Origin: Takakia lepidozioides
Taxonomy: Eukaryota > Plantae > Bryophyta
Length of the DNA: 64,000 nt
Reading direction: 5' to 3'
Assembly (NCBI GenBank): GCA_030704615.1
Contig: CM060733.1
Coordinates: 31,310,001 to 31,374,000, forward strand
Positions 20,897 through 62,587 of the stretch are shown piece after piece. Numbering within the stretch: position 1 is the first letter of the stretch; each line of letters opens with the position of its first letter. The translations under genes and the position numbers were made by a program. A model generated the notes under the pieces. It made no database searches. It saw only the letters and a list, made by a program, of their open reading frames with translations, and was not told the origin of the DNA.

Positions 20897-20961
20897 TTTC
20901 GGAGATCCTATAGATACAGTGACATGGAGAGGTTTTTTATTTAGATGAGGACTCAAGATCT

Positions 20962-22037: not shown

Positions 22038-22417
22038 TGGAAATTCGGCACCCAATACCCAACAGGGGCCGCACGGATGAAGTCGTCTGGGGCAGAGATG
22101 CCGGCACCTGTCCGACAGAAAACATCCCCCGGATGGAAATTCAGCGCCGAATTTCCATTCGGATCCACCCAAAGGAAGTCCTGTCGGGGGGTCAGGCCGA
22201 AAACTGGCCGACCTAAAAACCTCCGCGGATGGAAAAACGGTGCCGAATTTCCATCCGAGGCCTTTCGGATGCAGTCGGCTCGGGGGAAAGGCCGCCATCT
22301 GGCCCTCACATTACAACCCCCGGACGGAAATTCGGCACCGAATATACCCCGGATGAAGTCGCATCGGGCGCAGAGGTCGGCGCGTGTGCGACAGAGAACA
22401 TCCCCTGGATGGACATT
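22038..22417. repeat. Cluster of GGAAATTCGGC(A/G)CCGAA-type semi-palindromic repeats
   Basis: GGAAATTCGGCACC (~22039), GGAAATTCAGCGCCGAATTTCC (~22135), GGAAAAACGGTGCCGAATTTCC (~22231), GGAAATTCGGCACCGAAT (~22326). Confidence 0.85.
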
Positions 22418-23436
22418 TGTTAGAGGACGGTAGGGGACTTAGACACTTATACGGGATCTGTAGGGTACCCTTAATTTTTGCACAGACTGAGACAAACAGG
22501 AACCTTAGGGGTGACAGCAGCGCACTGTAGAGGGGGGTTACATAGCCCACACAGCCGACACAGCAGTCACAGCCCACACAGCCAACACAGCCGTCACAGT
22601 CGTCACAACCCACACAGTCGTCACAGCCCACACAGCCCGTCACAGTCGTCACAGCCCACACAGCCCACACAGCCGTCACAGCCCACACAGCCCGTCACAG
22701 TCGTCACAGCCCACACAGCCCACACAGCCAGTCACAGCCCGGCACAGCCACACAGCCAGTCACAGCCCGACACAGCCAAACACAGCCAGTCACCGCTTGA
22801 CACAGCTGTCACGATAATAGGAACGAAGAGTAGGACAGGGAACGACTGTGGGGAACAACACCTGTGAAGGGAACATGTTAATTCACATACGACGGTTAGA
22901 GAGGGAAACGGTTAGAACCGCGGATAGGAGGATAAAGGGAAGAACGGGGAATGATGAAGGGAGGAGGATTATTATTATGGGAAGGAGGATTTCGGAGTGA
23001 GACGGGAGCGGAAGTCGGTGAGCACGATGAAGGAGGAAAGAGGATTAGTAGATGCTTGTTATATGCAAAGCTGTAGGGATATTTTAGAGGAGAATAGAGA
23101 CACAATGGCTTCGGCCTGATACCTGATAAATCATAATCTGATACTTATACGATACAATCATACTGTGTAGAGAGATATGAGTGAAGCTGTGGATTGAATG
23201 GAGGAGTGAAGGAAACCGATAAATTGATGAAGCAAACTGATACTTAATTATCAATGGTAAGGTAGCTAAGATGAATGCGGAAAAGGAAACAAATAGGAAA
23301 CACCCCCATGATACACTAGCTGTAGGTCATGACTGATTGTTCTGCGCGGGCTGAGTACTTAGAGATTTCCAACTCTTCTATCTTGGAGTTTCCACCTCGG
23401 ATAGCGAAGGGATGGGTGAGTAAAAGCCGCGCGACA
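22418..23436 (+). repeat. 5' LTR of element B, containing a CACAGCC-type minisatellite (22545-22810)
   Basis: Starts TGTTAG where the U2 repeat is cut and ends GCGACA just before the PBS. Confidence 0.7.
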
Positions 23437-23438
23437 TT

Positions 23439-23457
23439 TGGCGACCATACTGGGGAC
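23439..23457 (+). promoter_or_regulatory. Primer binding site of Tat/Ogre type (probably tRNA-Arg)
   Basis: TGGCGACCATACTGGGGAC resembles the TGGCGACTC..CTGGGGA PBS of Tat/Ogre elements. Confidence 0.7.
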
Positions 23458-23459
23458 CT

Positions 23460-24024
23460 GGGACATGAACAACCAGATGTGACAGGCATCTGGTGGGATC
23501 ATGGTGGTTGGACCATTAAAGAATTTGAAGTGAATCAAATTCCCTGTGGAACGAAGGAAGAAAGATTGTCCAAACAATTCTTTCAAAGGTTCTTGGAATT
23601 GCCAGACGGATGTAAAGAAAATATTCTTAAACGAGTGCATGATGCTGATCCAGAATGGGGTCTGGAGAAAGGAGTGATAAAGATTTATCAGGTAGCCTGT
23701 AGAGGAAGAACACGTTGGTTACCAACATTAGTTTATGTGATAGCGTTGCTATCCATTAAACGAGTAGAGTTTGAAGGCTGGGAAGAAAGAAAGGTGAATG
23801 TTTATACTCATATGCATGAAGAGCTTGTACTGGTAAAGAATTGGATTCCAAAGGATATTTTGTGGATCAAACTCACACCAAGAACAGCTTTTCAGACTTG
23901 TTTGCCATATGGTTATATGGTAACGGAGACTTCAAGTATAGCCAAGGGTGCATTGAAGCTTGAAAGAAATCCAGGCATATACGAGAGATATTACAGAAGA
24001 GAGTTTTGGTTATTGCCACATTAA
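23460..24024 (+). CDS. Extra ORF upstream of gag (function unknown)
   Basis: An open frame of about 190 codons between the PBS and the gag start, with protein-like composition. The start codon is uncertain. Confidence 0.5.
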
Positions 24025-24045
24025 AAGAAATGAAAGACATGGGAC

Positions 24046-27000: not shown

Positions 27001-30000
27001 GGATGAGGAGCAGGAAGCTACCCTATTTGCTGCACACCCAGAGTGGGAGCAGGTTGCAGAGATGCGGCTGGAAAGCCTAAGTTGTTTGAGAGGTATCTGC
27101 TGTGGTGTAGTGACAGCAACACCAACTGAAGAAGAAACCAGCATTTACCCATCACATTTCTATGAAGAAAGAGAAGGAGAAATAGAAATCCTAGAAGAAC
27201 CAGCCACTGTGAGCTTACAGGATGAAGTGGTGACTGGTTGGACAATCACAGCTGATGAGCAGGTGAGAGAAGTAAATGTGGGAACTCAGGAGGAACCGAG
27301 GATGGTGAAAGTAGGAGCTGATTTGGAGCCGGAATTCTTCGAAGAAGCAAAAGCTTGTTCATCAAATACAGAGATGTATTTGCTTGGAGCTATGAGGATC
27401 TAAAAGGGATACCACCTGAAGTCTGTCAGCATAAAATTGAACTGGAACCAGGGTCAGTACCAATCAAGCAGGCGAGGTATAGAATGAATCCCAACTACGC
27501 ACAGAAGGTTGGAGAAGAGATAAAGAAGTTGGCTGAGGCTAAGTTTATATACCCAATAGAGTATACAACTTGGTTGTCACCCATTGTTATAGTTCCCAAG
27601 AAGAATGGCAAACTAAGAGTATGTGTGAACTATAAGAAGCTGAATGCTTGTACGAAGAAAGATCCTTTCCCTTTGCCATTCACAGAAGCAGTATTAGACA
27701 CTGTGGCAGGCCATGAGATGTACTCATTCATGGATGGCTTCAGTGGTTATAATCAAGTGCAAGTGGCAGAAGAAGACCAAGGGAAAACAGCTTTCATCAC
27801 AGACTGGGGGGCTTATGCATACAAAGTCATGCCCTTTGGACTTTGTAATGCACCAGCGACCTTTCAGAGAGTGATAAGTGAATCTTTTCAGAGTATCTGG
27901 ATGATTTCATGCAGGTGTTTTTGGATGATTTCAGTGTGTACAGCTCTAAGAATGAGCACTTGCATAAATTGGAGTTATGCCTGGCCAGATGCAGGATGAG
28001 AGGTCTGGGCTTGAACCCAGAGAAGTGTACTTTCTGTGTGAACTCAGGGGTGCTTCTGGGACACATTGTGTGTAAGAAGGGACTCCTTGTGGATCCCAGG
28101 AAGACAGAGTCCATTAAAGCCTCTCCACCACCAGTGAATGTTAAGAGTTTAAGGAGATTCCTTGGGCAAACCAGTTATTACAGAAGATTTGTCAAAAGGT
28201 ATGCACAAATAGCAGCACCATTGAGCAAGCTTCTGAAGAAAGATGCAGTGTTTGCATGGACAGCTGAATGTCAACAGGCGTTTGAGGAACTTACACTGTC
28301 AGTAACAACTACACCTGTGCTGATTAACCCTCACTGGCATGTAGTATTTCATGTTCACTGCGATGCATCAGGAGAAGCGTTGGGAGCGGTGTTAGCCCAG
28401 AATGTTACAGGGAATATAGATTCACCTGTGTACTATGCTAGCCGGTTGATGAACAGTGCTGAGAGGAACTATAGCACAACGGAAAGAGAAGCATTGGCAA
28501 TGATCTATGCAGTGAAGAAATTCAGGCATTACCTATTGGGAAGAAAGTTTATGTTTTATGTGGATCACCAGGCTCTGATATATCTGGTGAACAAACCTTT
28601 GATAAGTGGAAGGATAGCGAGGTGGTTAATAATCTTGCATGAGTTTGAGTTCGAGGTTATTTACAAGCCTGGCCGTTTGCATCTTGTGGCAGATCATTTG
28701 TCACGACTAACAACAGGAGAGGCCGCCACAGGAGTGGACGATCAGTTACCTGATGCGAGTTTATTTGTAATGGAGGTGCAAGGAAGTGCAGATGAATGGT
28801 TAGATTGGCAGTGGCCAATCAGATACTACCTTGCTCATGGTCAGTGCCCACCTAGTTATGGTAAGGAGCAGAGGAAGAGAATCGCTATCAAAGCTTTACC
28901 TTATACTATGGTAGGAAGCAGAATGTATAAGTTAGGACCTGATGGGGTACTAAACGATGCTTGTACCACCATGAAGTAAATAAAGTCTTGGAGGAAGTTC
29001 ATAAAGGAGTGGCTGGAGGTCATTTGGAGAAGAGACTACCAGTAGAAAGATACTACTCGCAGGATACTGGTGGCCTACTTTGTTCAAGATGTACATGAGT
29101 ATTGTCAGAAGTGTGATGAATGTCAGAGGCTAGGACCTTGCAGAGATCTGGAAGAATGGCCTTGCATCTACAATGCCTACGGAACCATTTCAGAAATGGG
29201 GACTAGACTTTGTTGGACCAATTAATCCACCATCCAAGGAATACACAAAACAGGTACATAATTACAGCCACTGATTATACTACAAAGTGGGTGGAAGCTA
29301 AAGCTTTGAGGGACAACACAGCCAAGTCCACAGCAAGGTTCCTGTACGAGAAACATACTTACACGATTTGGATGTCCCTTAGAATTTATCAGTGATCAAG
29401 GAAGTCACTTCATGAATGAGACCATTGAGTTATTGACTAAAGAGTTTATGATTGTGCATAGAAAGAGTACAACATATTACCCACAGGGTAATGGACAGGC
29501 AGAGGCTACCAACAAATACTATGTACTATCTTGGCTAAGATAGTCAATGCAAACAGAACGGATTGGGATACAAAGCTGCTGACAGCTTTGTGGTCATACA
29601 GGACTTCATATAAAGTCACCACTAAGTATACACCATTCCAATTAGTTTATGGTATGGAAGCCTTACTTCCAGTAGAATTCTGTTACCTACCATGAGAACG
29701 GGAGTGGGGAAAAAAAAATGGAATTGCAAGACTCCATCAAGGTCAGGAGGAAACATGAATTATACCATGTGGAAGAAGTACGTGCTGATGCAGCTGATAA
29801 TATGACCAGAATTCAGATGAAGAGAAAGGAACAGTTTGATGAAGGCAAGTAAAGATTTTAAGACGGGGATTGGATTGGTTCTATGGTTGCAGAAGAAAGG
29901 AAAGATTCAAGCTTCTAAGCTTAAATCACCCGGAAAGGACCTTAGTCATACAAAAGATGTATGATAACAACACAGCCATGTTACAAACCATTAACAAAGA

Positions 30001-30082
30001 AATGCTGGGAAGAGTCAATGCAAATAAGTTGAAGGGGTACAGTGGTATCCATGACAAACCCCTGCACATGATTGCATGTTGA
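24046..30082 (+). pseudogene. gag-pol polyprotein with frameshifts
   Basis: Gag YSGKGDPDVHI; three CCHC knuckles (CAKCQNEGHTTTEC, CTICKMDNHSTENC, CYYCNQPGHRKAAC); protease LIDGGS; RT MPFGLCNAPATFQ and FLDD; RNase H HCDAS...YSTTERE; integrase [13 protein letters not shown]. Confidence 0.95.
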
Positions 30083-30179
30083 ACCGCAAGAGCAGTCACG
30101 GGCTGCACCAGTGTTACGAACGGAGTATGGAACACTTGTCGCTAGGCCCAGTATAAGACCGGGGTGGGCAAAACAAACG

Positions 30180-30500
30180 TGACACAGCCTATCACAGCCT
30201 ATCACCGCCCATACGGGGTGACACAAGCCTATCACAGCCTATCACAGCCCATCACGGCGGGACAAGCCTATCACAGCCATCACAGCCACACGGCGTGACA
30301 CACCTATCACAGCCCATCCGCGTGACACAGCCTATCACAGCCCATCACCGGCGTGCACAGCCTATCACAGCCCAGCACGGCGTGACACAGCCTATCACAA
30401 CCTTCCGACGTGACACAGCCTACACAACCTACCGCACAGAGTTATCACAGCCTAAAGCTTACCACAGTGACACAGCCTGTCACAGGCTCAACACAGCCTA
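30180..30500. repeat. CACAGCCTAT-type minisatellite downstream of integrase
   Basis: Repeated ACACAGCCTATCACAGCC units. Confidence 0.85.
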
Positions 30501-30969
30501 CAAAGTTACACGATCCATAGAATCAGTGACAAGTGGACACATAAAAACTTCAGGAAAATGGCTGAAGGAAGAAGAAACGGAAATTACTTTAAAAAATAGA
30601 CACGTGGAGGTCAGGGTGCGACACACAGCAGAGAATGAAGTGGCAAGGACAGGTGTCAAAAAGAAAGAGCAAAGAACGGCCGTCAAAAGGGATGAAGGGC
30701 GGCCATTAATGAATACGGAAAAGGGAAACAGAAACGAACGGCAAGTACAGAAAAAAACGAATTATGTCGCATGTGTGATCCTAGTGGACTATCCAACAGG
30801 GAAGTCCACTAAAGAAGATAAAAGTTAAAATCCAGTACAGGCGGATACAGCCAATAGAAAACCAGAGAAATGATCAAGAAAATGGAGGGAAATGAGCGCA
30901 AGAGGGGCGTCGTTCTGAGTAACGGGCGTCGTATCGACAGGACAGGCATATAAATGCTATAACTTGGAA

Positions 30970-33900
30970 ACTATGGAGGAACTAACAGACTATACGCTCG
31001 CAAATTACTTACGCAACTGGCAGAGACACGAAACGAAAGAGCAGAGCTTTCTCTGAACAATGCTTGCAAGCCCCGCAGGCTTACAAGAGATACCCATAGC
31101 TTTCTGCGGCAACCATACGTTATGCTTTGTGCACTACAGGCATTCCTGCAGTGTTACAGCCAAAGCAGTTCTGTGAGTTAAGATGAAGAGAGTGAGAATG
31201 GAGGAGGAAATCAGGGTGAAGAGCCACCACAATTCTGCAAAAAACAACGATGGCTACCCCACAGGCGTAAGATACTGAAGGAGCTGAGATTGGAGGATGC
31301 AAAGCATGGATTGGACACTACACCATAGACAGTACATGTTACAATTTTGCAGAACTTTGAGCAAAGACAGGAACAACAACGGTGAAGGGAGTTGAATTAA
31401 TGACTCCCCTATTACCTCCAGCAATTGTTTCGAGTGCCAGCAGGTCATGTGTATGTGGAGGAACACAGGGAAAGACTGCAAATAGGGGATTTATTCCAAG
31501 AAGGAGTTTCTTTAAAACTCAGGGTTATGCTGTACCAAAGTGTGTACCCAGGGGTTAAAAGACATGGCCAAGTATGAACGTTCTGATTGCCCTGAAACAG
31601 AACAACAATATTTGAGCAGATCCTTCACAGAGGAAATCCTCAAAGCTTGAAGGACTAAGAGGTACCATGGCGGACATAATGTACAACGCAATGGTAGAGG
31701 AGATGAAAAGATACATGGACTACCGCAAAATCTCTATCATAGTGTCTGGCCCAATCATTGCTCAATAATCCTTTGATTCTCGCCATACTTAATGCAAAGA
31801 AAGGAAAGGAAATGGGAGTGTTTGAGCCAGAAAGAAGCAACAACTGCAATGGAAGACAAGGCTCTTCACACAGTGAGGGTGGACTATCAGCACAACACGA
31901 GACTAAGAGGCAGAGAAGGGACAGACTGTAGTGGCAGATCACTGCTTTAACGGATTCCGCATTGAAATGTTCCAAGCTCATGGCCAGAAGGGGCACAGCA
32001 GCACAAAAGAATGTTATTACTGGAAGCAGGACCTTCAGAGAGGAGGAAGAAGTAGTTACTTCTGCATCACAACCAACACAGCCACTTGAACGACTTGTCA
32101 CAAGGTCACAAGGTATCCATGCAGCTCAACCCGAAATAATGATTGGGAAAGTGAAGGATAGATATTCCAACTACAGAACAGATAGTGCGGAAATAGAGAA
32201 AGGGGACCTTCTCATGAATATTCTGGTCTGGTCAAGCAACACGAAATCCCAGAGGGGCAACAGTTGCCCAAGAGAAATCCTGAGGTACATATAATGCACA
32301 CACCTTGTCGGAGGTACCACAGGCGGAAGGCCATGACATGGTAGCACCGGTCATAAATGAAGTAGTTCAGGAAGAAAATCCGGTGGGACAATGGTCTGAA
32401 TGGTTAGTGAGACATCATACTGTTGAAGATCGGGAGAACAGCAGCAAACTCACCCTGATGACCCTCAACAGGCAATGCTGATGAGTTCCATAGGCAGGAC
32501 ACTTAATTTGTTGGGGACTTATGTCAAAACCCATGTTACAATTACCCCCAATTGACAGCCTGAAAGAAGAAGAACTCAGGAAGGAGTTTGAGGCTCGACT
32601 TGCCACTGAGTGTGCAAACAAGGTCGATGAAGAGGTCACTCTCAAGATGAAGCAGGACTTGGCCAATACAGAATGGCTTTGCAATTGGCCAAGCAACAAT
32701 TGTTGAGGCAGGCCTCGCGCAAGACCAGTTGCACGAAGCACATAAGCAACAGCTATACCAAATGCGGGTGCAGCATGAAAGCAAGTTGCAAGAACTGAAT
32801 GCACTACATACGGAGTTGCAGACAGTGCAAACAGGATGGCGATTCAATGCGTACATTTACAACTATGCTTGACCAATCAACAAAAGAAATAAACAGTCAA
32901 GCGGAAAAATGTACGAAGGCAGAAGAAGAGAATGTGGCGACACTGAAGCTCATGTCGATATGGAGAATACAATCTGTCGCAATGAAGATACTTTCAGCAA
33001 TACAGGCAGATGGAAGCTGAGCAAGAGAAATACATCGTGGAGTTGCAACAAACCATCGTGGCCAATAGAAATGAAATCGCGGTCAGTAACAAGGCTTCGA
33101 AAGAAGCCAATAATCTACTTGCTGCCTATGCGCAATTGGTGAGCCAAGGCGAAGCGCATGAAGGCTTTACAACAGCAGTGGAATTGTAGAAGCTAAGAGA
33201 AGAGCAAACTCTCAGGGGAACCACAAGCAGCTTGGGGATAACAGCCTTATGCAGGTGGTTAGCACAGGGCCAGTAGAAGGCAAAGCCCCACGGGAAGCTC
33301 ACCCAAAGCGAGATGAATGAGCTAGACTGCAGGTGCAGAACATTGCCACAACTACTATAGACAATGTCTATAGTATGATAGCAGAGTTACAAGAGGATGT
33401 AGACGGACTCCAGACTCAAGTGAAGACCTCACTTCAAACATCGACCAAAAGGTCTATATCCCTCAGGAACAGCTAATGGCTTCTTATTTGAAGCCAGAAC
33501 TCTGGCTTTTCAGTCTTCACAGGAGGTGCAGGAGATGCCAATGGTAAGGAACCAGTACCACCACCACCACAACAGGTCAGTGTTGTACCAGTAGACTGAA
33601 CTGTGGTTACACAACCACACCACAGCACCACAGCCGGAGGTATGGGGCAATGCAGCTTTTAACCCATAAAACTCCAGCTGCCAGGGAGTAAGTAGGGCTA
33701 GGATTATTGCCCTTCACCAAATTCCCATCATGTTGGATTGGTGGAAAGAATTTAGTCCTCCGCCAGTCATTCGCACATTACTACCCAAATCATGCGTATT
33801 GGCTGCCAGTGGCAACCAGGACTAAAGTTCTTCCAAACATCGACATATTGAAGATCATCACTTTGCACAATACTGGCACGAGGCAGGTACCATTGTTGAG

Positions 33901-34557
33901 GGAATTGGTTGCTTTCCAGGTGTACATGGACTCATTTATACCAAGACCAAGGAGATAGCAAGTATTGTCATGGGGTGCGGGCTATACTACGCTGCTTGTT
34001 TTCGGATGATACGTTACCACATAGAGCAACAAAAGATGCAAGCACGCTTTCAAGTTTACTCCAGTGGAGATCATTGGGTAACCTCGGTGCCACCTCATAT
34101 GTACCTATATGACCCAAAAGTTATGATACAAAGGATTCTCAAATTCGTTCATGGTTTCAAGCAGCCTGCAACAATTGTCAACACAGAATTCGGACTTGAT
34201 GACTTTTATATAAGGGACCTATCGCATGGAAAACTTGCACGCTTGCAACAGTAATTGGTACCCCATCATCTGGACAGACAAGGAGCTCCGTGTCTACACC
34301 AATTTTGCGTTCACCGGTTACACCAGGTTTGTAAAATGCAAACTTCCAGACATGGTAGGACAGAATTGTATGCCCCAGATGATGCCACAAAAAGTTCGAA
34401 AATTTAAAACACTGGAGGCGATGAGGAGGATTCGATACAACTTGTTTCACAGAATTCTTTGACAGGGGACGCTCGCAATTCAGATGGAAGAGAAGAAGAA
34501 CAAATGGGGTTTCCCTATGCCGAAAGATTACTCGATAATCAGCCTCCAGAAGGCCTC
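30970..34557 (+). pseudogene. Degraded 3' accessory ORF of element B (homolog of 846-3707)
   Basis: Short peptide matches to the element A ORF and coiled-coil fragments at 32521-33142, with many frameshifts. Confidence 0.5.
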
Positions 34558-35057
34558 NNNNNNNNNNNNNNNNNNNNNNNNNNNNNNNNNNNNNNNNNNN
34601 NNNNNNNNNNNNNNNNNNNNNNNNNNNNNNNNNNNNNNNNNNNNNNNNNNNNNNNNNNNNNNNNNNNNNNNNNNNNNNNNNNNNNNNNNNNNNNNNNNNN
34701 NNNNNNNNNNNNNNNNNNNNNNNNNNNNNNNNNNNNNNNNNNNNNNNNNNNNNNNNNNNNNNNNNNNNNNNNNNNNNNNNNNNNNNNNNNNNNNNNNNNN
34801 NNNNNNNNNNNNNNNNNNNNNNNNNNNNNNNNNNNNNNNNNNNNNNNNNNNNNNNNNNNNNNNNNNNNNNNNNNNNNNNNNNNNNNNNNNNNNNNNNNNN
34901 NNNNNNNNNNNNNNNNNNNNNNNNNNNNNNNNNNNNNNNNNNNNNNNNNNNNNNNNNNNNNNNNNNNNNNNNNNNNNNNNNNNNNNNNNNNNNNNNNNNN
35001 NNNNNNNNNNNNNNNNNNNNNNNNNNNNNNNNNNNNNNNNNNNNNNNNNNNNNNNNN
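34558..35057. other. Assembly gap (500 N)
   Basis: A run of exactly 500 N; the round number suggests a scaffolding gap of unknown true size. Confidence 0.99.
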
Positions 35058-48982: not shown

Positions 48983-49293
48983 ACTTGACCCAGAAGGGCT
49001 ACTGCCTTCAGATATATGTAATAAATAATATAATAAAATAGGGTTTTTTTTACTAGGTAATAAATCAAAATAAGCTCCTTGTGTTCCACTCGCCTTCTCA
49101 CTCTGATTGACCTGCACAAAAATTGTAACAATATATCAAAGCACAGCGATGAAGAAAGTGCTTTGTAGATTACTTTTGTTGAAGTCTGTAGATTGCTGAA
49201 GTAACCAATGAGATAGAAAAGAGCACATAAAGAGAAGTGAATTTGACATGTAATGTTCAAGTGGGCCCACCGCAAGGTCCTCGGACCTCCTCA

Positions 49294-52200
49294 TCAAGAA
49301 GTACGGCTTCGAATCAACATTGGAAATCCATCTTTGGGGATGTAGGTCCTTTTCAGTTTGTAGTTGTCTGGGACTTCGTCAGCTCCCACCCGATCCCACC
49401 TGCCAAGCTAGTCTAGTACATTTTTTAAAATGCTGAAGACAACAAAATGAATGCTAATATCCTTGGGCCGAGAGTGGGTCCTTTGCAATGCACTACAAAA
49501 AGCCAGATCTAACTGAATAGTTGTATTATCAAACACGAGCGAAGAGTTGCTTATCTATGCTAAGTAAGGTTGTTGTCATATGTATAAAGAACACGAGCAA
49601 AGATATATATATATATATATATTACTATTACTATTTTACATCTCAATAAGAGCACATGATGCAACATTACATCACCAACCACAAATACAAAACTTGTAAT
49701 TAGTTCATAACAGTAAACATGTTACCTGCATTTGGCCACAAGGTGGTGTACTAGAAAGAGGGCCTGGGCTCGTGCCACGTCTTGTCCTGGGCATAAGTTT
49801 GCGCCCGCTCCGAAAGGCAAAAATGTGTTGGGTTTGGGAGGTGTCTTTTGACACATGGTAATAGTACACCAATCAATTCCATTTTGGATCCACGACGAGA
49901 AGCCAAATGACTTGGGCATATTTCCTTTGTTTCTTTACATGGTTCAATTGAAGTTGTTGATATTGAACAATACATGTCCTTCAATAATTCATACTTATGT
50001 GGTACCAGTGCCAATTTAGATACCTACTAAAGTAACATAAATGTATCAATTTAAATTAGAACAGCGTGAGGAGAGGTTAAATGAAAGGGGTTGATAATGT
50101 AATGCCCTGCATCATATTTCAAGTAACTTACTATATAAGTAACTAAGAAAAAAATAGTAACTATTTACTATTAGCGGTTTAATTTTTTTTTACTAGATCT
50201 TATGTTATTCTACTAGACACAAATTATCAATTCCTAGCATGTTGAAACTTCCTAATTGACATGACTCATCAACATACACACCAATGAAAGCTTTTGGACA
50301 CAAAAAATAGTCTTGACACGTAAAGGACAGTTGCCCACATATTCTCCATTGCCTGCAGAATCATGCAAAGTCTGACATAGCCAACAAATCCACGACATGT
50401 ACAATACACTGAACAGTTTTGGATAGAAACATACTTGGAACCTAGATGGCTTGAACATCAGCGGGTCTGGATAAATATTTGGGTCTGTATGAACAACAGC
50501 TACTGATCCCCATACGAACGAACCTTTTGGAATTTTGTAGCCTGCAGTCACATGTAATGATGTGCAATCACAAGTCACATATAAATACATGAGATGCATG
50601 GATTGAGCTTTGTACTAAACAAGTGAAATAGATATAGCAATATAATTTTAAAACTTCCGATTCTCCATTGCATCACGATCAAATTTATTGAAATTACATG
50701 TATGTGTGTCATACTTGTAGAGGACTTGTACATCCAGAATTGACGGCTATGGTGAAATATGGGTCCAAAGCATAAGATCGAGACTCTAGGTTGTGGTGAC
50801 TTAACGTACATCCGAGCTGCACCCGAAAATTCATCATTGTGCACTTTTTTTTGGTTCTAAGTTCAAGACTGATCATCTTGCATTTGAAGCAATCAATAAT
50901 TTAATAATAATTATACGATATATATAAACCAAGTATACCTTTAAAAGTAACAGTTTCGGCAGCTTGTCTTGATAGCACTAAGCCGAATGAATGAAGCCGC
51001 AGAACCTCATCAATTACCTATGAGGTCACATTGTTGCAGACATGTGTGCCTTAAGATACATGTAAATAGACAAGTTTCAGGAATTTCAAACACACAGTAA
51101 CAAAGAGGACAGAAATGACTCTTGACCTTCATCCACATGTATCACAATTGGAAATGTCCATGCTCCAAAGGTAAGTTGAATGAGAAAACATTTTGAAATA
51201 TGGATATAGAATACGTACTTGTACTGTAAGAGGCATAGATGATTTTATGTTGAACCATTTCAAGGAGTCATCTTCAAGCATTTTCTTTTGTACTCCATCC
51301 TGCTCTGCCTGCGCAAATCATTGTACACACCATACCAATCAAGCATTGAGACGTAACAACTTGGACTGTAATTTATGATCCAATTCATGTTCACATTGAT
51401 GATATACATTCATTAATTAAGAGCCGGGTAAGTCAGTTTAGATTTCACTTGGTTGTAATTTGGAGACTTCAAATGCTTATAATAAGCAAAATCTGAACTG
51501 ACATATGTTAGGCCAACAATTGTAGAATCATATGATTCTGTGGGCAACAATACCTGAATGGATTCTAGCACTCTTGGATAGTCGTGAAGATATTTGATAA
51601 TCCATGGAAGCATACTTGATATGGTAAACCTGAACGCAAAGAATGCTGCAAGGATGAAGCAGGCCATGTCATAATGTGAATGGTTGTGGGTCTTATCCGC
51701 CATTATGCAGCTTAAAAGGTCTTTTCGTTGGCATCCTTCTTCAATCCTCTTTGTTATGCATTTCTGAATGCGGCCAATAAATACTTCCCGAGCCTGAATA
51801 ATATAATCACAAATAGAAGAAACCATCCTTTTAGGCCAATTTGTATCCAAACCACGGCTGAACAATTAGTAATATAAATCATGCACAATAACTCCTCAAT
51901 AGTCACCATTCAAGAAGAGCAACGGGACACCGAAAGATTGAAGAGAGTGACTAGGATGGTGAAGGGGACCATCACCTTCAATGCCTTGTAGTAGGGGAAA
52001 GGGGGAAGATTGATTGGTACACTGAAAATCCCTCTTTTAATTATCTCCATCTCTTCCTGTACACCCTCTATTTCTTTGTCTGCCGTCTCCGTCCACGCAA
52101 GGTCCATATACGCAAGAGTGGTAAACTGCAAAACACCACTCACGCACATCACTCGCACAAAATATGTTTACTATCAGCAAGACTGGCATGTATAATGTTC

Positions 52201-53400
52201 AATGCATGACAAACTGCTGCTGCTAGACTCAGTGGAGAGATTCATCGGCTTTTGTGTGTAGGTACCTTAAGTGTCTCCCCAACTGCATTCACTCTCCCCA
52301 TCTGTATCCAAGTGTCAACTGCTTCACAAGCACGGCGGTTGATGTGTGGGAAACTATTGCGGAGATTCTGACCCGTGAATGTTGCCACTATTATCTTAAA
52401 GACATAATCTTGTGCAGCCGATCTAAGTTCTTCGTCAGTAACATTTCGTAGGAGCAATAGATTGAATATAAATTTAGGGTACACAGCCTGGAGCAAACGT
52501 TGAGCAGATGAAGCGAGAAACTTGATAGACTCAGGAGAGTTCAAGACGATGATGGGGTAGCCCAATATTGACATTCGGTAAAGCTCTCCACATCTGCAAG
52601 CAAGGTCCATCCACATCATAATTAGTTCGTCTAAGAGAAAACAATTCCACGCAGAGTGAATATTAAATTTTAGTGAACTCCTCACTGGGGACTAACTGGG
52701 GACGCAATATAGTTAGGTTTGTGCGGCAGTCAGACATCTCTAGACTCTAAGGCTTGCAGACTTTGCTTCTTAGTACCCCTCACTTGAGCAGATACATTCC
52801 GGCATCGCAAGAGAGATACTCTAGAGAGGCTTTTCAGTTTTGGCACAAAATAATAATTAAAAATAACATTGTCCGAAGTTTTCATAAATTTCCCCTTACA
52901 TGTTGAATTTTCAGATTCTTAATTTCAAAAACATATCACACATTCCTTCATTGTGTTGATTTTTTTTAAATTCAGCAATGGCATGTCAATACTTTTTTCT
53001 AGTCAAATAAATATTTGGCACTCAAGTACCAGGCTCATCTGATAGCTATATTCATGAACGAAATGCATGTGCATATTACCAAGAATCTATTAGGGTCTTG
53101 TCATGAATCATGCATTGGGGTGCATGACTGCTTAATTACAAATGTAAACCTGAGAAAGCGATCGCGAAGGAACGTATGTACTCCTTGCCACAAAATTCGA
53201 GGGCCTTCTCCAACAAAGGGCAGACTCCAGCTGATTGCAGGTACTAGCTTCACTGTCTCATTACTTGTAACAGTTTGTTTTCTGGAACTTCGGGATGCGA
53301 AGCTTGAAGCGAGTATTCCCAGCATCACGACCAGAATTGCCCATGCCCATCGTGAATCGGCAACCTCAACCTCCATCTCCCCTGGGGCAGCAACTTCCAT
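49294..53400 (-). CDS. Cytochrome P450, CYP85 clan (CYP707/85/90-like exon structure), 9 exons, 489 aa, intact
   Basis: Exons 53150-53400, 52266-52593, 51976-52125, 51554-51793, 51219-51308, 50939-51017, 50435-50541, 49726-49844, 49294-49399. All introns are GT-AG and phases are consistent (1470 nt total). It has an N-terminal membrane anchor, LPFVGE, EVLR (ExxR), GYKIPKG, PSRF and the heme motif FGAGANLCPG. Exon sizes of 150/90/79/107 nt are typical of the clan. Confidence 0.93.
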
Positions 53401-55642
53401 ACTATATATCTGCAAGGAGAACCATCAGAATATGTCATATGTCTAGTGAGCATACTTATAAAATTATAAATCTAGAGTAAGTCATCACATCAAAGAAAAC
53501 AATGAATATCCGAGCCTCTAGTTAGCTCAGGAGAATTCTTCAGAGAAGATTTGTGAAGTTGTACAGGCCACCTGCTGATCCATGTGGCCAATCCTCTCGA
53601 AAGTACCTACAAAGCACAAAGTTTTACGCTGTTGATGTACAAATAAGCTGTAAACCCTGCTATATTCGGTTGGTGGGCCCACACATACTTTACTGTCCTC
53701 CCAAAAAACGAATGATTCCAGCCGAAAACTGGAAATATGAGTGCTCCTAGCCTCAGAGAGCTCCTGCATCTGCCAAGAGTTGGACACATACTGACCACTT
53801 GAAATGCAAGCGTGTGGCGACCATCCAAGATTATCTCACGTGTGGCTAGGTGGACCAGATAGTAGGCCTCCAACATAGGCAATGGGTGCATTTAAAGCGG
53901 CCTGACCATGCATTCTGTGGCCAACCACGAGGCACTCTGTAGTGGGGGAATACAGACAAAGTGGTTGAATTGTGGAAAATATGCCAGACTATTTGACTCT
54001 CAACAATGCTCCACATGGACTTACCTCACAGGAACCTTAAGCTCATTCGAAAGAGCCGAGATGTAAAGGATTCAGTTTCCAATGCTTTTTTTGCAACATT
54101 TCAAAAATAGTGTCCCAGAAGTGATGGATGTTGATGACTCAATTAGATAAAACCAAGACATGCAGGCTTCCAATCTCTTCACACAACTGCCTGGCCTAGG
54201 GAGGAAACATATCCACATAATCAATGACCTTATTGATTTAGCTCGAAGCCTCTTCCACTTGAGGGCGGGCTTCCAGCCTCCCGCAACCTGGTCATGCAGA
54301 TCAAGTGACACATCTACGTGAGGGTGTGCTGCAGAGACTATCGTACAGACAGATCCCACTCAACCTATATATACAATCTTCTTCCCCCGTTATACTTATT
54401 GCAAGTTTGAGAGGTCAACGCCCATAGCTGTCCAAGCCATAATATGTTCCCACGTATTTATCCTCATGGCTAATGTGACTTGAACAGATTTAGGAAGTAG
54501 TGGTGTGCTCAACGTCATGCATTGTGGTCTACAAACTGAAGGTCTACGTCTTTCAAGCAAAGTGTGTGCTCCATCTGTGAGGGTATATCTAGATGAGAGG
54601 TTGTTCTCTTCCTCCAGATAAACTAATCGTAAGATAACACGACCACGGCTCCTAGGCTTTGGGAGGCAACGCAGTCATCTTAGACCGTAGCTAGGGGGAG
54701 CCATTCTATCAAGATGTGTTGGACCTTCCCTTAGACCTTCATAAGCATGATCAGATGGGCCTGCCCCAACCATTAAAGATCCTTCATAAGCTTAAATGGG
54801 TGAAATAAATCTCTAAAGCTTGTTTGATTTCTGTTGCTAGCAAAGCAACTGGTAGCATCCATCAGAGAAAGGGAGAGGGTGGCATCAGTTCTCTTACCTG
54901 TGGTGAAGCAACCTCGAGGTGATGGAATTCAACTCGATCAGAAACTTTGAATACAGGTGTGCTTTCCCCCGACCAGACTGCAAACAAAATGATAGTTGCG
55001 GCCACGGAGCAACCTATCGTTGACTGCTTTAGTCCAAGAACCACCATAACACTTGCTTAGTTCGGTGCACGCCTCCCATGCCACTATCCTCCTCCCCATC
55101 TCTTGTACGCAAGACACCGGGTAGCTAGGACGACATCTAGACAGTCCAGTGAAAGTGACCTTATGTCCCTGCTCACAAATTGAAGTTAACGGTTGCCGGT
55201 CAAGTCTTCCTCTAACCAAAGTAGCTATGAGTTCTCTTGGCGTGCCGCAGTCCTCCGGATAAAGGCGGATAAAGGCGGATCGTAAGAACCCCTTTGTTCT
55301 CAATAAAGAGATGTCTGCATGCATGCAGTAATGGGCGAAAACCAGGTAGTCACACGCACACATTATCACATTCAGCAAGTAATCTATGGTAGGTAATCTC
55401 CAAAAGGATCTCACAAGTTTACACATGCTCAATAGTAGGGTCGCTCGGGCAACCAGTATTCCTGGGACTCTTTCTGGTTCGACAGTCCTATTCTGAGCTG
55501 GTGCGGAGCGCTAGCTTTGTAATTTAGATACGTATGTATACCTAGTCGACCCAACTTTAGAATTGACAGACATGCAAGCTTCCATAAGGAGTGTAACTAA
55601 AGACACCTCCCTTCTACCCAACTAAGGAATTGACGACAAGCT

Positions 55643-57801
55643 TGTTGGAGATGTCAAGGCTATAGCCCTTGCACCGCACACCGAGGACAGAACTGGACGG
55701 GTAGCTCGGTGGGAGAGGACACCACCGGAATGGGAGATGTTATAGGTTCAATCCCTAGCCCGACCACATGTCAATGGTTTTCCAACATGGTAATAATAAG
55801 TATGATGCCTCTTGAAGGGAGTGTAACTTAACTTAAACCAATGGTGTCTCTTAACTTAACTGGTGCTAATGGTGTCTCTTCACCACAAGAGCTATGCCTT
55901 CTTGTTGAAAGGTGGACACCTTCATGACACACCAGACCATGGTTTGGACCGTGGTTTGAACCCACAACCACATCCAACGTGGTATGTGCCCATTACCACT
56001 GGGCTACATGTTGGTTGTCTCCAACATAGTATCGGAGCTAGGGGAAAGACCTTGGGAATCACATTTTACTAAGTGTTAGAAATCACTAGGAGGATTTATG
56101 TGTATTTGTCTTGGTGTGGAGCCTTGCTCTACCATACTAATATCTATCGAGTTTTTTTTTTTAATCTTGAATCTAGTATAAGCATTGCTCCAGCAAACTG
56201 CTTCTATACTAACCTGCGACTGTTTGGTTGTCGACTAACTTGTGCTACTAACATTGTAAAATCTCCTTGTACACATGCATCACTAACAATAGATTGTTTT
56301 TTTTTTTTTTTTTTTTTTCTTCTTCTTTGTCACAATGACTACTAACGGGAAGAATATAGGATTAGGATTCTCTGAACAAAACAAGCTAGTTGGTAGATCT
56401 AACTATGCTGTATGGAGCTTCAAGGTTAACAATCGTCTGATGATCAGAGATGACATTTCTCATGTTCTTGATTCCAAGTTGAAGTAACTGAGGACAACGA
56501 GGAATTGTTTGAGAAACAACAGAGGAAAGCCTTGTCGTTTATTCGGGACACTGTGTGATAGACTTATCCCCTCAGTGAGTCGTATAGATATCCCCAAGGA
56601 GCTGTGGGATCATCTAGCAAAGGTGTTTCAGGTCAAATCTAACTCTAGAAGGCTCAACATCAGAAATAAATTATCTCTTCTCAAAAAGGATGATGACACT
56701 TCCATGGAATCATTTCTAGGCACAGTCACTGACCTAGTGAATCATCTTGCTTGTTTTGGAGAGATTAGAGATAATGATGTTATTTCAAAGATGGTACTGA
56801 ATGCCCTGCCAGATTCATACGAGTGTTATTACACTCAATCAATCATGATTTCTTACAAAGAAGAATTGCCGGATTTTGAAGAATTTTCTGGGATGCTGTT
56901 GTATAAAGAATCTCGACGAGAGCTCAAGAGCAAGAAGACCAGTGACAAGGATGAGGCACTTTGGGTGAAGTTCAAGAAATTTTAGAAAAAGGAAGGAGTG
57001 GTCACTCACGACTTTTTGCAACAAGAAATCCACATCCTGCTGCAACAGATGTGGCAAGCCCGGCCACTGGGCTCGAAACTGCGCTGTGCCATACGAGAAA
57101 ATCCTAAAGATTCACTCGAAGCAGCAAGCCAACATGATTGACGATGATCAAAGTGATCAAGACGGCTCTGACCCTGAGGATGATGAAATTACCGACTCAG
57201 CTCATATGCTAGAAGTTGCGTTAACTTCCATGGACGTAGGGAAAGAGTCTGACTGGTATGTAGACTCTGGAGCTAATAGACATATCTCTGGGAACAAGTG
57301 CTTGCTACAAAACGTAGTAACACCAGCTCGCACAAACACCGTGAGATCAGTTGGGGGGAGTACATCACAATGTGGCAGATCTGTCAAGGCACCTACAGAA
57401 ATCAGATTTTTGTTAACTCCAAGCACGTAGAGAACATCAGTTATCTTTTATTGCTCCATTTGAAAGCTGAAGGTTGGCAACCAAGGAGACTAGCTGAAGA
57501 ATTGGGCATTTTGGAGGTTGGACCTAATGCTCTATTATGTGATAATCAAAGTAGTGCAAAGATTGCAAAGAATCTAGTTTTTCATGCGAAGACAAAGTAC
57601 ATTGAGATACATCACCATTATATTAGAGAGAAAGTCGAGAGTGGTGAAATTGACATCATCCATGTTCCAACGTAAGACCAGATTGCAGACATACTCACCA
57701 AACCATTCGGCAAAATCAAATTTGAGAAGTTCAGGAAAGATCTTGGAGTTCACAGCTTGGTTCAATCCCTAGCCCGACCACACGCCAATGGTTTTCCAAC
57801 A
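55643..57801 (+). mobile_element. Internally deleted Ty1/copia element with a 5-bp TSD (AAGCT)
   Basis: TGTTGG...CCAACA is flanked by AAGCT at 55638-55642 and 57802-57806. 55745-55787 repeats at 57759-57801. It encodes gag (ELWDHLAKVF, LNALPDSY), protease WYVDSGA and the RNase H end CDNQSS...HAKTKYIEIHHHYIRE. Confidence 0.92.
55695..55766 (+). other. tRNA-like (Pol III A/B box) sequence within the copia 5' LTR
   Basis: GGACGGG pairs with CCCGACC-A as an acceptor-like stem. A box TAGCTCGGTGG; T-arm TAGG-TTCAATC-CCTA. The anticodon arm is degenerate. Confidence 0.7.
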
Positions 57802-58062
57802 AAGCTTCATCGCTCAGAGATTTCACACTGCAGATCTCACTGTCGAACCCCTCTGAAATCAAGCATGGCAGTGAAGGCTAGAGGTTTTATCTGCCCAAAA
57901 ACCTCTTCAAAGTGATGCTTGGAAGGCGTCGAGAGAATGCACCCTCATTGCCTAGCCCTGACCAAACAATATCCTGAAGCAGCTTCTACAGCTTGGAGGA
58001 GACACGGCTCGGACTGAATGGAGAGAAGGGCTCCCCAATGTGAGCAATGAAATATTATCGTA

Positions 58063-59672
58063 CCTTGCATGGAGGAATGATGGCTTGTCGGAACCTGGAT
58101 GCAGTAGCTTTTATATAGTACCGGTAAACGGCCTCCCTGGACCCTTCGTACCGCCCTCGTGCCCTGAGAGCATATTCAACCGTGTCCTGCCATCGGGCCC
58201 CGCCAAGCTGCTCATGGCGTGGAGTTTGGCCTGAATTTGAGTCTCGGTCTCGTATAGGAGACCGACGAAAGGACGTCCACGGCCCGCCAAGCTGCTCATG
58301 GGGTGGAGTTTGGCCTGAATTTGAGTCTCGGTCTCGTACAGGAGACCGACGGAAGGACGTCCACGGCCCGCCAAGGCTCGCGAATTTAAATAACCTCTTT
58401 CATAGTAATTGTGCCATGGAGACGTATAAATGGGACACCACCTAGCGAAGGGGGAGAATAGAATACTACACTTGTCAAGTAGCAAGATTTGACCCCAGAA
58501 TCATTTGGGTGGCACTCGGTGCAATTAACCAACTGAGCTACTGACTGTTGGTCTCATGAGTTAAAAAATGATTTAAACAATCTTCCGGAGGGTATACCAA
58601 TATGTTTGGATTGAATAACTTTAAAATTGACATGAACAACCTTCCGGCAGGTATCCATCAAATAAGACTCAATGATAAGAACAACCTTTTGTAAGGTAAA
58701 ACTATTTATATTCAATCTGAAAATGAGCCATGTTCCTATGAAAGAGATTATTTTCTCCTCTCACAAAAATTTAGGGGCCTGATTTGTGAGCGGCCGCTCT
58801 ATGGTATTTCTGTTTTTAATATGTTTTCCTAAAATATGGGAAGTATAACGCCCATATACAAGTAAAATGTAGTACAAATATAATACTTGTATGGGCGTTG
58901 ATCGTCATGTAGGCCTCATGGCCCATAAATGAAAGGGGGTTAATTTTTCCCCCTCCTCAAGGGCCTGAATTGTGGGCTGTCGCTCCCAAGTTTTCTTTTT
59001 ATAATAATAATAATAATAATAATTTATATCCGGGTTGATAACCGGTTGGTATTTGATTGGAATACCCATCCTATTGATACCCCTCCCCAAACCTCAAATC
59101 ATACTAATATTGAGAACCGACGGATATTAAAATTAAGTGAATCTTGCAATACTATGGAACCGGCTAGTATTGAAAATTTCTTTTCAATACCCGGACCTGG
59201 CTGGTATTAGGAAAAGTAATACCTGCCCAACACTACTCCTAACTCCCCAGTTGGTGAGAAAAACGAGATGTTAGCATCAATAATACTTGTCACTGATTAA
59301 TAACAATCACTTAAGATCATTCCAATAATTCTGTCATATACCATCACTCAATTATGCACTGGCTCACCGATTAATCTTAGTCCACTTTAGTGATTAGAAT
59401 AAGGCTCCATTACTCGCCATTAAATAGAGGATGTATTGGGGCCTTTGACTATACATCTTATCCATATTATATGCTCGTCCTCCCCCCACCGCCTTGCATG
59501 GAGGAATGACGGCTTGTCGGAACCTGTACGTAGTAGCTTTTATATAGTACCAGTAAACGGCCTCCCTAGATCCTTCGTCCCGCCCTCGCTGCCCTGAGAG
59601 CATCTCCAACGGTGTCTTGCCATCGCCCCGTGCCAAGCTCCACCGCCCTGTGCTCATGGCGTGGAGTTTGGT
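58063..59672. repeat. ~170-bp dispersed direct duplication (58063-58230 / 59492-59672) plus a local ~88-bp tandem repeat (58197-58375)
   Basis: CCTTGCATGGAGGAATGA.GGCTTGTCGGAACCTG...GCTCATGGCGTGGAGTTTGG occurs twice. Confidence 0.88.
58485..58547 (-). mobile_element. Degenerate tRNA-derived SINE-like head
   Basis: The minus strand reads TAGCTCAGTTGG (A box) ... GGGGTCAAATC (B-box-like). Confidence 0.4.
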
Positions 59673-60556
59673 ACAAGAGACCTGGAGAAGGACGTCCACC
59701 AAGGTCACACTAAATCTAGAGCCAAGGTGGGCTGGCCAGTCTGCGGATGCACCACACCAGGTTGCACCACACCTGCTATTCCTATCCCAAAAGCAAGATC
59801 GCGACTTCTTCATACCTTTGCGAGACATGCACGCACCAAACTTGCTCCCTAGTGCTTGGGCGTGCACGTGCACAAACATGCAAAAATATGGCGTACCCCT
59901 GACCTTGGCATAGGTCTCTCCGCGCCAAACATAGCGTTGGCGAGTGCGGTGGGTCACGATCCCGGAAACGGCCAGCAAAATCGTGATAGAAATGGCATTG
60001 CGTACTTACCTGCATTTGGGTGCTCTCATGATACCATATACCTAGGCGACACTACTTTGCCCTACAACTACAGGCTAGGGAGGACACCCACGAGAGGCTT
60101 GCCCAGTTATTAGAGTGAAGGGATAACTTTGTTTGGCTGACAAATTTCTCATCCACCAGCTTCACATCAAAATGTCTTTTCATCTGAAAGAACAAAACTT
60201 AGTTCATCCACACCCTGGAGCCTTTCGGGCGCCAAAGATAAGGCGATGTATTCATGCCCATTTGGGCCACGTAGGCGTACCGCCCGGGCGCATTCTGGGG
60301 GGCCTTTTCTATTACATAGAGCACTGCCAAAAAATATTGTTTGTATATATCGTGCGGTTAAAAGCAGAATTCATCGGAGTGCATTCCGAAATGCAGAATG
60401 CACCGGCAGGGAAATATTCTCTTAATTTTTTTGGCATTTCTTTACTCAGGGTGCTCCGCCGTTCCCAAACCCGTCGTCTCCGTACTGCAGCTTAAACTCT
60501 AGCACTTTTGTGAAAATGTGAACTGCTTACTGCAGGGTACGGGAGCATTGGAGTCC

Positions 60557-62587
60557 ATGGATGCAACACAGCTTGATCAGGTCATCAACAATGCCGTTGA
60601 GTGGAGTTTCCGTAAGCAGAATCGAGAGGGCTATTGGGCGGGCCAGGTCGAATCAGGCTGTACAATGGAAGCCGAGTGGATTCTGGCTATGCATTTCCTG
60701 GGCGTTACAGACGACCCAAAGAAAGATGAAGTCGTGCGCTGCATTCGGAGCATGCAAAGAACTGACGGATCCTGGGACACTTATCATCAAGCTCCTGCAG
60801 GTGACCTTAGCACCACCGTCGAGTGTTATGTGGCCTTGAAAGCATCGGGATCGCTACCCAATGAAGCATCCATGGTAGCTGCTCGAAAATGGATTTTTGA
60901 ACATGGTGGACTTCCAGCGACCCGCGTGTTCACGAAAATTTGGTTAGCTTTGTTGGGAGAATGGTCATGGGATGATGTCCCTTGCGTGCCCCCAGAAATA
61001 ATCTTCCTACCACAATACTTCCCGTTCAATCTTTACAACTTCAGCTGCTGGGCAAGGGGAACAATCGTCCCACTGAGCATCCTTTCTGCTCGGCGCCCAG
61101 TACGTCCGCTGCCACTGGACTTTTGTTGTCATGAGCTCCATGAACCAGAGGACATGAAACAACGTCAAAGCAAGAAAACTACTCTTTCAAATCTCACCAG
61201 ACATGTCTGTGAAAGTTTATTCCTCTACTTCGACAAGTTCCTCATATGGTATGGTAAGAGCCGTTTCAAGCCTGGCCGTGAGGTGGCCATCGCATGCTGC
61301 TTGGCCTGGATCCTCAGGCGACAAGATTCTGACGGAACTTGGTGTGGTGTACAACCTCCTTGGGTGTACTCGTTGATGGCGTTGAGCTGTGAGGGATTTG
61401 GCCTGGATCACCCAGCCGTCCGCAGCGGCATCCGGGCTTTTGATGCCCCTTTCGCGGTAGAGACCACGCGCGGCACCTACACCCCACCCTGCACGTCAGT
61501 CATTTGGGACACTTTGCTGATGCAACTAAGTTTGCTAGATTGTGGGATCGATTTTAAGGATCCCAAACTCGCACTCTCTCTCAGGTACATCCTCGATAAA
61601 CAAGTGTTGGTGAAAGGTGATTGGTGCGTCAAGGTGCCAGATGCATTGCCAGGGGGTTGGTGTTTCCAGTTTGAAAACGCATTCTATCCGGACGTAGACG
61701 ATACAGCGGTTGCGATAATCGTGCTGGGCACTGCGGCCTCCTACCCTGACGTGAAACGGGTAACGATGGCCTTGGAGCGGGCTCTTGGTTGGATCACTGG
61801 CATGGTGTGTAGCAACGGTGCATGGGCCGCGTTCGACAAAGACAACATCAACCAGTTGCTATGCATGCTCCCATTCTGCGATTTCGGGGAGGTTCTTGAC
61901 CCGCCGTCAGTGGACGTGACGGCGCATGTTGTGCAAGCTCTTGGTATGTTGGGACGCACCATGAAGGACCCCTTGGTTGCCGGTGCTGTGAAATACATCC
62001 GAGCGGAGCAAGAGCAAGATGGCAGCTGGTTTGGTCGGTGGGGTGTGAACCACATCTACGGCGTCGGCTGCGTGTTGCCCGCACTGGAAGCCGTCGGCGA
62101 GAGCATGGAATCCCCGTATGTGCGGAAAGCTTGCAGCTGGCTGGTGGCCCACCAAAACGAAGACGGCGGATGGGGTGAATCTTGTGCTTCTTACGTTGAC
62201 CAAACCTTGCGCGGCGTGGGTCCCAGCACTCCGTCACAAACCGGGTGGGCACTGATGGCTTTACTGGCTCAAGGCTCAGCCGCTTATCTTCAACCGATCA
62301 GAAACGGAGTCGACTATCTTGTGCGCACACAAACTAGCGAGGGCTCATGGCACGAGGAATACTTCACAGGCACAGGATTTCCTGGGTATGCAGGAGGTGG
62401 TAATGTGGACCTGCGATCGAACAGCTCGCAGGTGCAACAGGGCAAAGAGATGAGCCGAGCATTCATGCTGCGATATCACATGTACCGACACTACTTCCCG
62501 CTCATGGCCTTGGGTCGATCCCGGCAATACTTCGCCAACTTGCAGGGCTCCATATCTCCTGCACCCACATCTCATCTGCAACTATAG
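60557..62587 (+). CDS. SHC: Squalene-hopene cyclase, bacterial type; uninterrupted CDS, 676 aa from the first ATG
   Basis: Catalytic YPDVDDTA (DXDD rather than the DCTAE of oxidosqualene cyclases). QW repeats QNREGYW, QRTDGSW, QDSDGTW, QEQDGSW, QNEDGGWGE, QTSEGSW. Also RVFTKIWLALLG, PFCDFGE, DVTAH, FTGTGFPG and YRHYFPLMALGR. A likely splice acceptor (CTGCAG at 60535) could add an upstream exon. Confidence 0.97.
   Translation: MDATQLDQVINNAVEWSFRKQNREGYWAGQVESGCTMEAEWILAMHFLGVTDDPKKDEVVRCIRSMQRTDGSWDTYHQAPAGDLSTTVECYVALKASGSLPNEASMVAARKWIFEHGGLPATRVFTKIWLALLGEWSWDDVPCVPPEIIFLPQYFPFNLYNFSCWARGTIVPLSILSARRPVRPLPLDFCCHELHEPEDMKQRQSKKTTLSNLTRHVCESLFLYFDKFLIWYGKSRFKPGREVAIACCLAWILRRQDSDGTWCGVQPPWVYSLMALSCEGFGLDHPAVRSGIRAFDAPFAVETTRGTYTPPCTSVIWDTLLMQLSLLDCGIDFKDPKLALSLRYILDKQVLVKGDWCVKVPDALPGGWCFQFENAFYPDVDDTAVAIIVLGTAASYPDVKRVTMALERALGWITGMVCSNGAWAAFDKDNINQLLCMLPFCDFGEVLDPPSVDVTAHVVQALGMLGRTMKDPLVAGAVKYIRAEQEQDGSWFGRWGVNHIYGVGCVLPALEAVGESMESPYVRKACSWLVAHQNEDGGWGESCASYVDQTLRGVGPSTPSQTGWALMALLAQGSAAYLQPIRNGVDYLVRTQTSEGSWHEEYFTGTGFPGYAGGGNVDLRSNSSQVQQGKEMSRAFMLRYHMYRHYFPLMALGRSRQYFANLQGSISPAPTSHLQL

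Follow-up and report, generated by a model that had tools for sequence, protein, structure and literature searches.

A bacterial-type squalene-hopene cyclase gene head-to-head with an atypical cytochrome P450 gene in Takakia lepidozioides: gene cluster or independent neighbors?

Do a squalene-hopene cyclase (SHC) gene of bacterial type and a cytochrome P450 gene that stand side by side on a chromosome of the bryophyte Takakia lepidozioides act in one pathway, or do they only adjoin each other? The question arises from a 64,000-nucleotide stretch of this genome (GenBank assembly GCA_030704615.1, contig CM060733.1, positions 31,310,001 to 31,374,000 of the forward strand), here called the window and numbered from its first letter. 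An earlier note, made from the sequence alone, had seen 2 intact genes head-to-head with start codons 7.16 kb apart, and had proposed that they form a candidate cluster of mixed ancestry for the biosynthesis of hopanoids or other triterpenes. The gene pair itself is as described: frames, motifs, and splicing all agree with 2 intact genes, and the distance from ATG to ATG is 7,157 bp. Our answer to the question, to which we give a probability of roughly 0.6, is that the adjacency is physical only, and that these are most likely independent neighbors, both of them genuine, intact, and transcribed.

In outline, 2 bryophyte genes, arranged head-to-head, would share a small gene island within transposon-rich DNA. 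The SHC, anciently acquired and host-adapted, would protonate squalene via the aspartates of its DxDD motif and then fold the substrate to pentacyclic triterpenes of the hopene or diplopterol type, and the P450 would be a clan-85-like enzyme, anchored in the endoplasmic reticulum (ER), from a small, lineage-restricted family in which the I-helix acid has given way to a hydrophobic residue. The coding parts of the 2 genes are given below, where joints are those seen in transcript contigs from 2 public runs of one organism (X1 and X2), mapped on positions 49100-53600.

60557-62587, plus strand: SHC coding sequence, intronless, recognized by its open reading frame, Pfam domains, match to PDB entry 1gsz, QW repeats, membership of a plant clade, and ratio of nonsynonymous to synonymous divergence (dN/dS).
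53150-53400, minus strand: P450 exon 1, with the ATG at 53400, a hydrophobic N-terminal anchor, the hinge region, and a GT donor; joint 52593/53150 in both X1 and X2.
52266-52593, minus strand: P450 exon 2, with exon fragments about 40% identical to it (P0121, P0123, P0124, and P0126) and transcript joints.
51976-52125, minus strand: P450 exon 3, with transcript joints 51792/51975 and about 52126/52268.
51554-51793, minus strand: P450 exon 4, with the I-helix AAFFAFRFTISS followed by WIIKYLHDYP; Pfam p450, E = 0.0046.
51219-51308, minus strand: P450 exon 5, with transcript joint 51307/51553.
50939-51017, minus strand: P450 exon 6, carrying ExxR as EVLR; transcripts show a 201-nt joint, as long as predicted but displaced by 4 nt.
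50435-50541, minus strand: P450 exon 7, which contains PSRF; Pfam p450, E = 3.8e-8; best PDB match CYP120A1; transcript joints.
49726-49844, minus strand: P450 exon 8, with the heme loop FGAGANLCPG; Pfam p450, E = 3.1e-5; best PDB matches CYP90B1 and taxadiene 5-alpha-hydroxylase; joint 49844/50435.
49294-49399, minus strand: P450 exon 9, with the stop codon at 49296-49294; joint 49397/49724, cut +2.

The SHC gene occupies an uninterrupted open frame on the plus strand from 60518 to 62587, in which the first ATG, at 60557, gives a protein of 676 amino acids. Pfam recognizes both alpha/alpha-barrel domains (SQHop_cyclase_N, E = 4.7e-107; SQHop_cyclase_C, E = 1.8e-126), and a PDB search returned a nearly full-length match (1gsz, E = 2.9e-166) to the enzyme of Alicyclobacillus acidocaldarius, which in its structures (1gsz, 2sqc) has in common with the window protein the 2 barrel domains, the DxDD motif, QW repeats, and the aromatic residues of the cavity. 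The proton-donor motif DVDDTA is intact, aligns with D374-D377 of 1gsz, and is invariant across the homolog alignment. Read from this alignment, the equivalents of W169, W312, F365, D447, H451, W489, and Y495 of 1gsz are kept, as are those of F601, F605, L607, Y609, and Y612, and 7 QW-type repeats follow the pattern Q-x(2-5)-G-x-W. The window protein differs from the A. acidocaldarius enzyme in 2 respects. Tyr420 is replaced by Phe, as it also is in the Eremiobacterota- and Armatimonadota-like relatives that make up the donor clade, and a stretch of about 25 residues is inserted after GTGFPG. We considered this stretch as a possible unspliced intron and rejected the idea because all of the nearest bacterial SHCs carry it as well. 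All SHC catalytic motifs that were checked are present and the gene is intact; judging by the conserved catalytic residues, its products are most likely pentacyclic triterpenes of the hopene or diplopterol type.

That this is a bacterial-type SHC, and no oxidosqualene cyclase, on a plant chromosome had been read from the sequence before, and Pfam, the match to 1gsz, and phylogeny bear this out. In a set of 5.8 billion proteins, the top matches are 62% to 63% identical to the window SHC, and 2 of them were traced to dense bacterial contigs. A protein with 56% identity (P0052) belongs to a cluster that includes a Physcomitrium patens sequence (UniRef A0A7I4C5V7). The window protein, P0052, P0014, P0016, and P0025 form a five-member plant clade with 100% support in a FastTree tree of 129 rows, and the same clade appears in an IQ-TREE quick search of 39 rows under the site-mixture model LG+C20 (SH-aLRT 99). 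It is nested within bacteria, among them an Eremiobacterota isolate (L006) and proteins named Armatimonadota or Vulcanimicrobiota. The P. patens protein, annotated as "terpene cyclase/mutase family member," is like the window SHC in being intronless, bacterial-type, and nuclear. The two are 56% to 57% identical, and the window branch, which is the shortest of the plant clade, is far shorter than that of P. patens (0.36 versus 1.36 in IQ-TREE). The genes for P0016 and P0025 sit on the eukaryote-like contigs L086 and L087, which are gene-poor and have 41% to 42% GC; L086 (1-5900) and L087 are the ENA metagenome-assembly contigs ERZ24794493 and ERZ24794494, and are probably DNA of a bryophyte in an environmental sample.

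Compared with the genes on these 2 contigs, the window SHC has a dN of about 0.31 and a saturated dS, for a nominal dN/dS of 0.09 to 0.12. Its GC content at third codon positions (GC3) is 0.58, between 0.44 for the neighboring P450 and 0.80 to 0.91 for the nearest bacteria. The saturated dS, the low dN/dS, and a GC3 below that of the nearest bacteria together point to an old, host-adapted gene under purifying selection. Horizontal transfer from bacteria has already been published as the origin of bryophyte SHCs (Li et al. 2018, PMC6786969) and is repeated in PMC9667741, and the window SHC is a result of the transfer described in 2018 and no new acquisition. Such bryophyte SHCs are already known, and the window gene is a further example of the published kind. 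The mixed ancestry claimed for the locus therefore stands insofar as an SHC derived from bacteria adjoins a native P450, but bacterial-origin SHCs of bryophytes are not new. Squalene cyclases of the ferns Adiantum and Polystichum (PMC6222715) are likewise plant enzymes of SHC type, which make hopane or fernane hydrocarbons directly from squalene; they are of a cyanobacterial lineage (PMC6786969), whereas the window SHC belongs to another, Eremiobacterota-like one.

An intronless gene with its top database matches on dense bacterial contigs might also stem from bacterial contamination, or have been transferred so recently as to be no settled plant gene. The window SHC, however, shares one gap-free stretch with a spliced P450 and plant retroelements, clusters with the SHC of P. 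patens, has a GC3 far under that of its bacterial relatives, and is represented by 0.26 to 0.31 of its words in RNA runs described below; this reading is effectively refuted. The earlier statement that no gap separates the 2 genes is also correct, the sole run of Ns in the window being at 34558-35057, outside the gene-pair stretch. We considered carriage of the SHC as transposon cargo as well and rejected it, there being no bracketing repeats around the gene within the window.

The P450 gene runs on the minus strand from 53400 to 49294 and consists of nine exons separated by eight introns, all of them GT-AG. Together the exons make up 1,470 nt, which encode 489 amino acids and end in the sole stop codon. 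A nine-exon layout is typical of the CYP85 clan. The predicted protein has an N-terminal anchor in the form of a hydrophobic 19-mer from residue 18, the ExxR motif as EVLR at residue 357, and the PxRF motif as PSRF at residue 411. In the heme loop, FGAGANLCPG, the Cys ligand of the consensus FxxGxRxCxG is kept, and the Arg position holds Asn in the genome and His in transcripts: all 5 transcript contigs that cover codon 431 (49799-49801, minus strand), 4 from X1 and 1 from X2, have His. Taken at the level of sequence, the P450 is intact and would be ER-anchored.

Contigs from X1 and X2 cover only the exons of this gene, with zero intron depth, and all eight introns are skipped in them at the predicted sites or 1 to 4 nt off; the joints between exons 1 and 2 and between exons 7 and 8 are present in both runs. 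Because the contigs are exon-only and skip every intron, X1 and X2 are RNA and the P450 model is right, in agreement with the native, intron-rich P450 that the earlier note had placed beside the SHC. Sampled words of the SHC stretch were found in the 2 runs at shares of 0.31 and 0.26, and since P450 splicing shows these runs to be RNA, the SHC is, by these word shares, transcribed too. Both X1 and X2 thus contain transcripts of the SHC and the P450, or else of copies very close to them. The contigs carry no expression levels, and the finding is one of co-presence, not co-expression.

The transcript contigs over the P450 are 90% to 99% alike, with two to four versions on some exons; in X1, two to four differing contigs with 90% to 95% likeness were seen per exon. 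These multiple versions suggest another genotype or a mixed sample, or else several expressed paralogs. A near-identical spliced contig is also present (X2 record 12). The listed differences between genome and transcript contigs comprise 20 nonsynonymous and 13 synonymous codon changes, which suggests that constraint among the P450 copies may be only moderate. Just upstream of the ATG the transcript contigs diverge from the genome (loose end at 53415), and short pieces of longer contigs match 53544-53599; this mismatch may reflect an intron in the 5' untranslated region or a repeat.

What kind of P450 is it? Database searches were done exon by exon, and the joined model was checked for frame and motifs and compared by local tblastn with fetched loci. 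Exon 2 had twelve matches among 1.84 billion representatives, the nearest being exon-size fragments about 40% identical to it, and no annotated full-length plant P450 was found for this exon at E < 0.001 in the same set. Three of the exon 2 relatives were traced and sit on eukaryote-like contigs of 1 to 4 kb. Exon 4 retrieved from the 5.8-billion-protein set one 94-amino-acid fragment, without a named full-length relative; residues 1-90 of P0126, used as a query, gave only a self-match, and a text search for the heme-side peptide of the P450 found nothing. The family, met in these searches solely as exon fragments that carry no annotation, seems to be small and restricted to this lineage.

Matches to solved structures give a broader placement. 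Searched exon by exon, the P450 matched CYP90B1 (E = 7e-5), CYP725A4 (E = 4e-4), and CYP120A1 (E = 4e-4), and the best matches of the heme-loop exon were the clan-85 enzymes CYP90B1 (6a15) and taxadiene 5-alpha-hydroxylase CYP725A4 (8x3e). By these matches the gene looks clan-85-like, as had been proposed, with the difference that its family has a hydrophobic residue where clan-85 P450s have the I-helix acid. By language-model features, the nearest named cluster to the I-helix exon is one called "putative abscisic acid 8'-hydroxylase 4 (fragment)" (score 0.94); the 165 features that the two share fall below the 170 typical for the same family. This likeness to an abscisic acid (ABA) 8'-hydroxylase, an activity of the CYP707A family, is a lead, as is the apparent resemblance of the heme-side and K-helix peptides to CYP707A.

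The least expected feature of the locus is the I-helix of this P450. Its sequence, AAFFAFRFTISS (AFRFT at the relevant site), departs from the pattern A/G-G-x-D/E-T-T/S: it retains the Thr but has neither the Gly nor the acid. The relatives L004 (1840-2349), L005 (3188-3427), and P0149 have ASTFT, AGFAT, and AGTMT at this site, followed by a nearly invariant WxIKYLHDYP, so the acid position is hydrophobic in all 4 family members seen (F, F, A, and M) and the Thr is kept. Loss of the acid is then a property of the family and no private decay of the window copy, and this family-wide pattern argues against decay of the P450. We had asked whether so odd an I-helix marks a pseudogene; the idea is weakened by the 3 relatives that likewise lack the acid and by the splicing and transcription of the P450.

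A wider version of the same idea is that, within its family, the window P450 has weakened or is decaying, while still transcribed, and that the pair has no joint function. The absence from AFRFT of the Gly and acid of AGxD/ET would fit this, as would the heme-loop Asn where all X1 and X2 contigs have His, the 20 nonsynonymous against 13 synonymous changes, and the lack of any P450 match in the PDB for the I-helix exon. We nevertheless consider decay improbable: the 489-codon frame is open across nine exons with canonical splice sites, the ExxR and PSRF motifs and the Cys ligand are kept, all of the family members seen have a hydrophobic residue where the acid would be, and near-identical spliced contigs exist (X2 record 12).

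The 2 genes are head-to-head across a gap-free spacer of 7,156 nt, in which the following could be recognized.

55745-57801, plus strand: degraded copia-type retroelement between SHC and P450, with a gag domain, a weak Pol_BBD match, and bracketing 43-nt direct repeats.
58063-59699, no strand assigned: repeat block with units of about 150 nt at 58063 and 59492 and an 84-nt tandem duplicate at 58199-58366.

The copia gag (Retrotran_gag_2) lies at 56509-56985 (Pfam, E = 4.9e-16) and the weak Pol_BBD match at 57086-57430, and the direct repeats that bracket the element start at 55745 and 57759. The rest of the spacer is without annotation, and hardly any of it has further copies in the window. 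The description of the spacer as mainly transposable-element debris is therefore right for the copia element and the repeats at 58063-59699 and does not extend to the remainder of the 7.16 kb, which is unannotated.

The chief alternative to independent neighbors is a functional two-gene module, in which the SHC would make a hopane-type scaffold from squalene and the adjacent P450 would hydroxylate or otherwise oxidize it. Physical linkage of non-homologous enzyme genes is present (divergent, 7,157 bp between ATGs), the 2 genes stand head-to-head in an otherwise gene-poor 64 kb, both are intact with transcripts in the same 2 RNA data sets, and the P450 resembles clan 85, a clan with many established triterpene oxidases; oxidized hopanoids are reported from liverworts. 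The arrangement also resembles the thalianol, marneral, and avenacin clusters, where a triterpene cyclase gene adjoins a P450 gene. Those clusters, however, use oxidosqualene cyclases, contain at least 3 co-expressed genes, and are experimentally proven, whereas the present pair has an SHC, consists of 2 genes, and is known from sequence. Two genes fall short of the three or more pathway enzyme genes typical of plant clusters. With a retroelement and other repeats between the genes, a shared promoter is unlikely, and the P450 family appears to be mobile or expanding, since several transcribed versions of it are 90% to 95% alike, so its members may land anywhere. Among named clusters, moreover, the I-helix exon comes nearest to that of the ABA 8'-hydroxylase fragment, and the 5.9 kb upstream of the SHC on metagenome contig L086 contain no P450 exon. 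We judge a functional module of this kind unlikely, and rather unlikely the more specific proposal that the SHC and an atypical P450, from a previously undescribed family without the I-helix acid, make up a working two-gene module that produces an oxidized hopanoid.

Several points weigh against our preference for independent neighbors. The L086 test is weak, as it concerns one contig whose upstream sequence falls short of the 7.16 kb that separate the genes here (L087 offers just 2 kb of SHC flank). Neighboring cyclase and P450 genes are enriched among true plant terpene clusters. SHC and P450 transcripts were also found in the same 2 transcriptomes, X1 and X2. Comparative evidence from other genomes covered the 1- to 4-kb contigs of the P450 relatives, a genome scan of bacteria and archaea, and a metagenome scan with the SHC, which yielded bacterial genes alone, none more than 54% identical. 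On the other side, a literature search for an SHC-P450 cluster in ferns or bryophytes came up empty.

Hopanoids of bryophytes and ferns are membrane and defense lipids, and are among the sources of "bacterial" hopane biomarkers. To our knowledge, no enzyme is known that tailors the product of a plant SHC. If the P450 did act on this product, it would be the first plant hopanoid oxidase, and would mean that a cyclase of foreign origin can become the core of a plant gene cluster; the module would then be the first of the plant triterpene clusters to rest on an SHC gained by horizontal transfer and not on an oxidosqualene cyclase. Should the pair have no joint function, the locus would still hold a clean, slowly evolving, expressed copy of a moss-type SHC suited to functional assay. 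In addition, it gives access to a family of P450s whose oxygen-activation site is unusual.

Elsewhere in the window, we examined 18 other large open reading frames at 1-41 kb, 2 of which have retrotransposon domains and 16 of which have no Pfam match. By Pfam, there is no further recognizable enzyme gene among the large open reading frames of the 64 kb, a survey in which spliced genes were not covered exhaustively; within that scope, it fits the view that the SHC and the P450 are the only 2 intact host genes here. An 876-amino-acid open reading frame at 18008-20638, without a Pfam match, adjoins a gypsy-type gag/protease (25091-27403) and a reverse transcriptase-RNase H region (27909-28979). 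The stretch from 16000 to 34000 has a strong purine skew on the plus strand, with a GC skew of +0.2 to +0.3 and an AT skew of up to +0.3.

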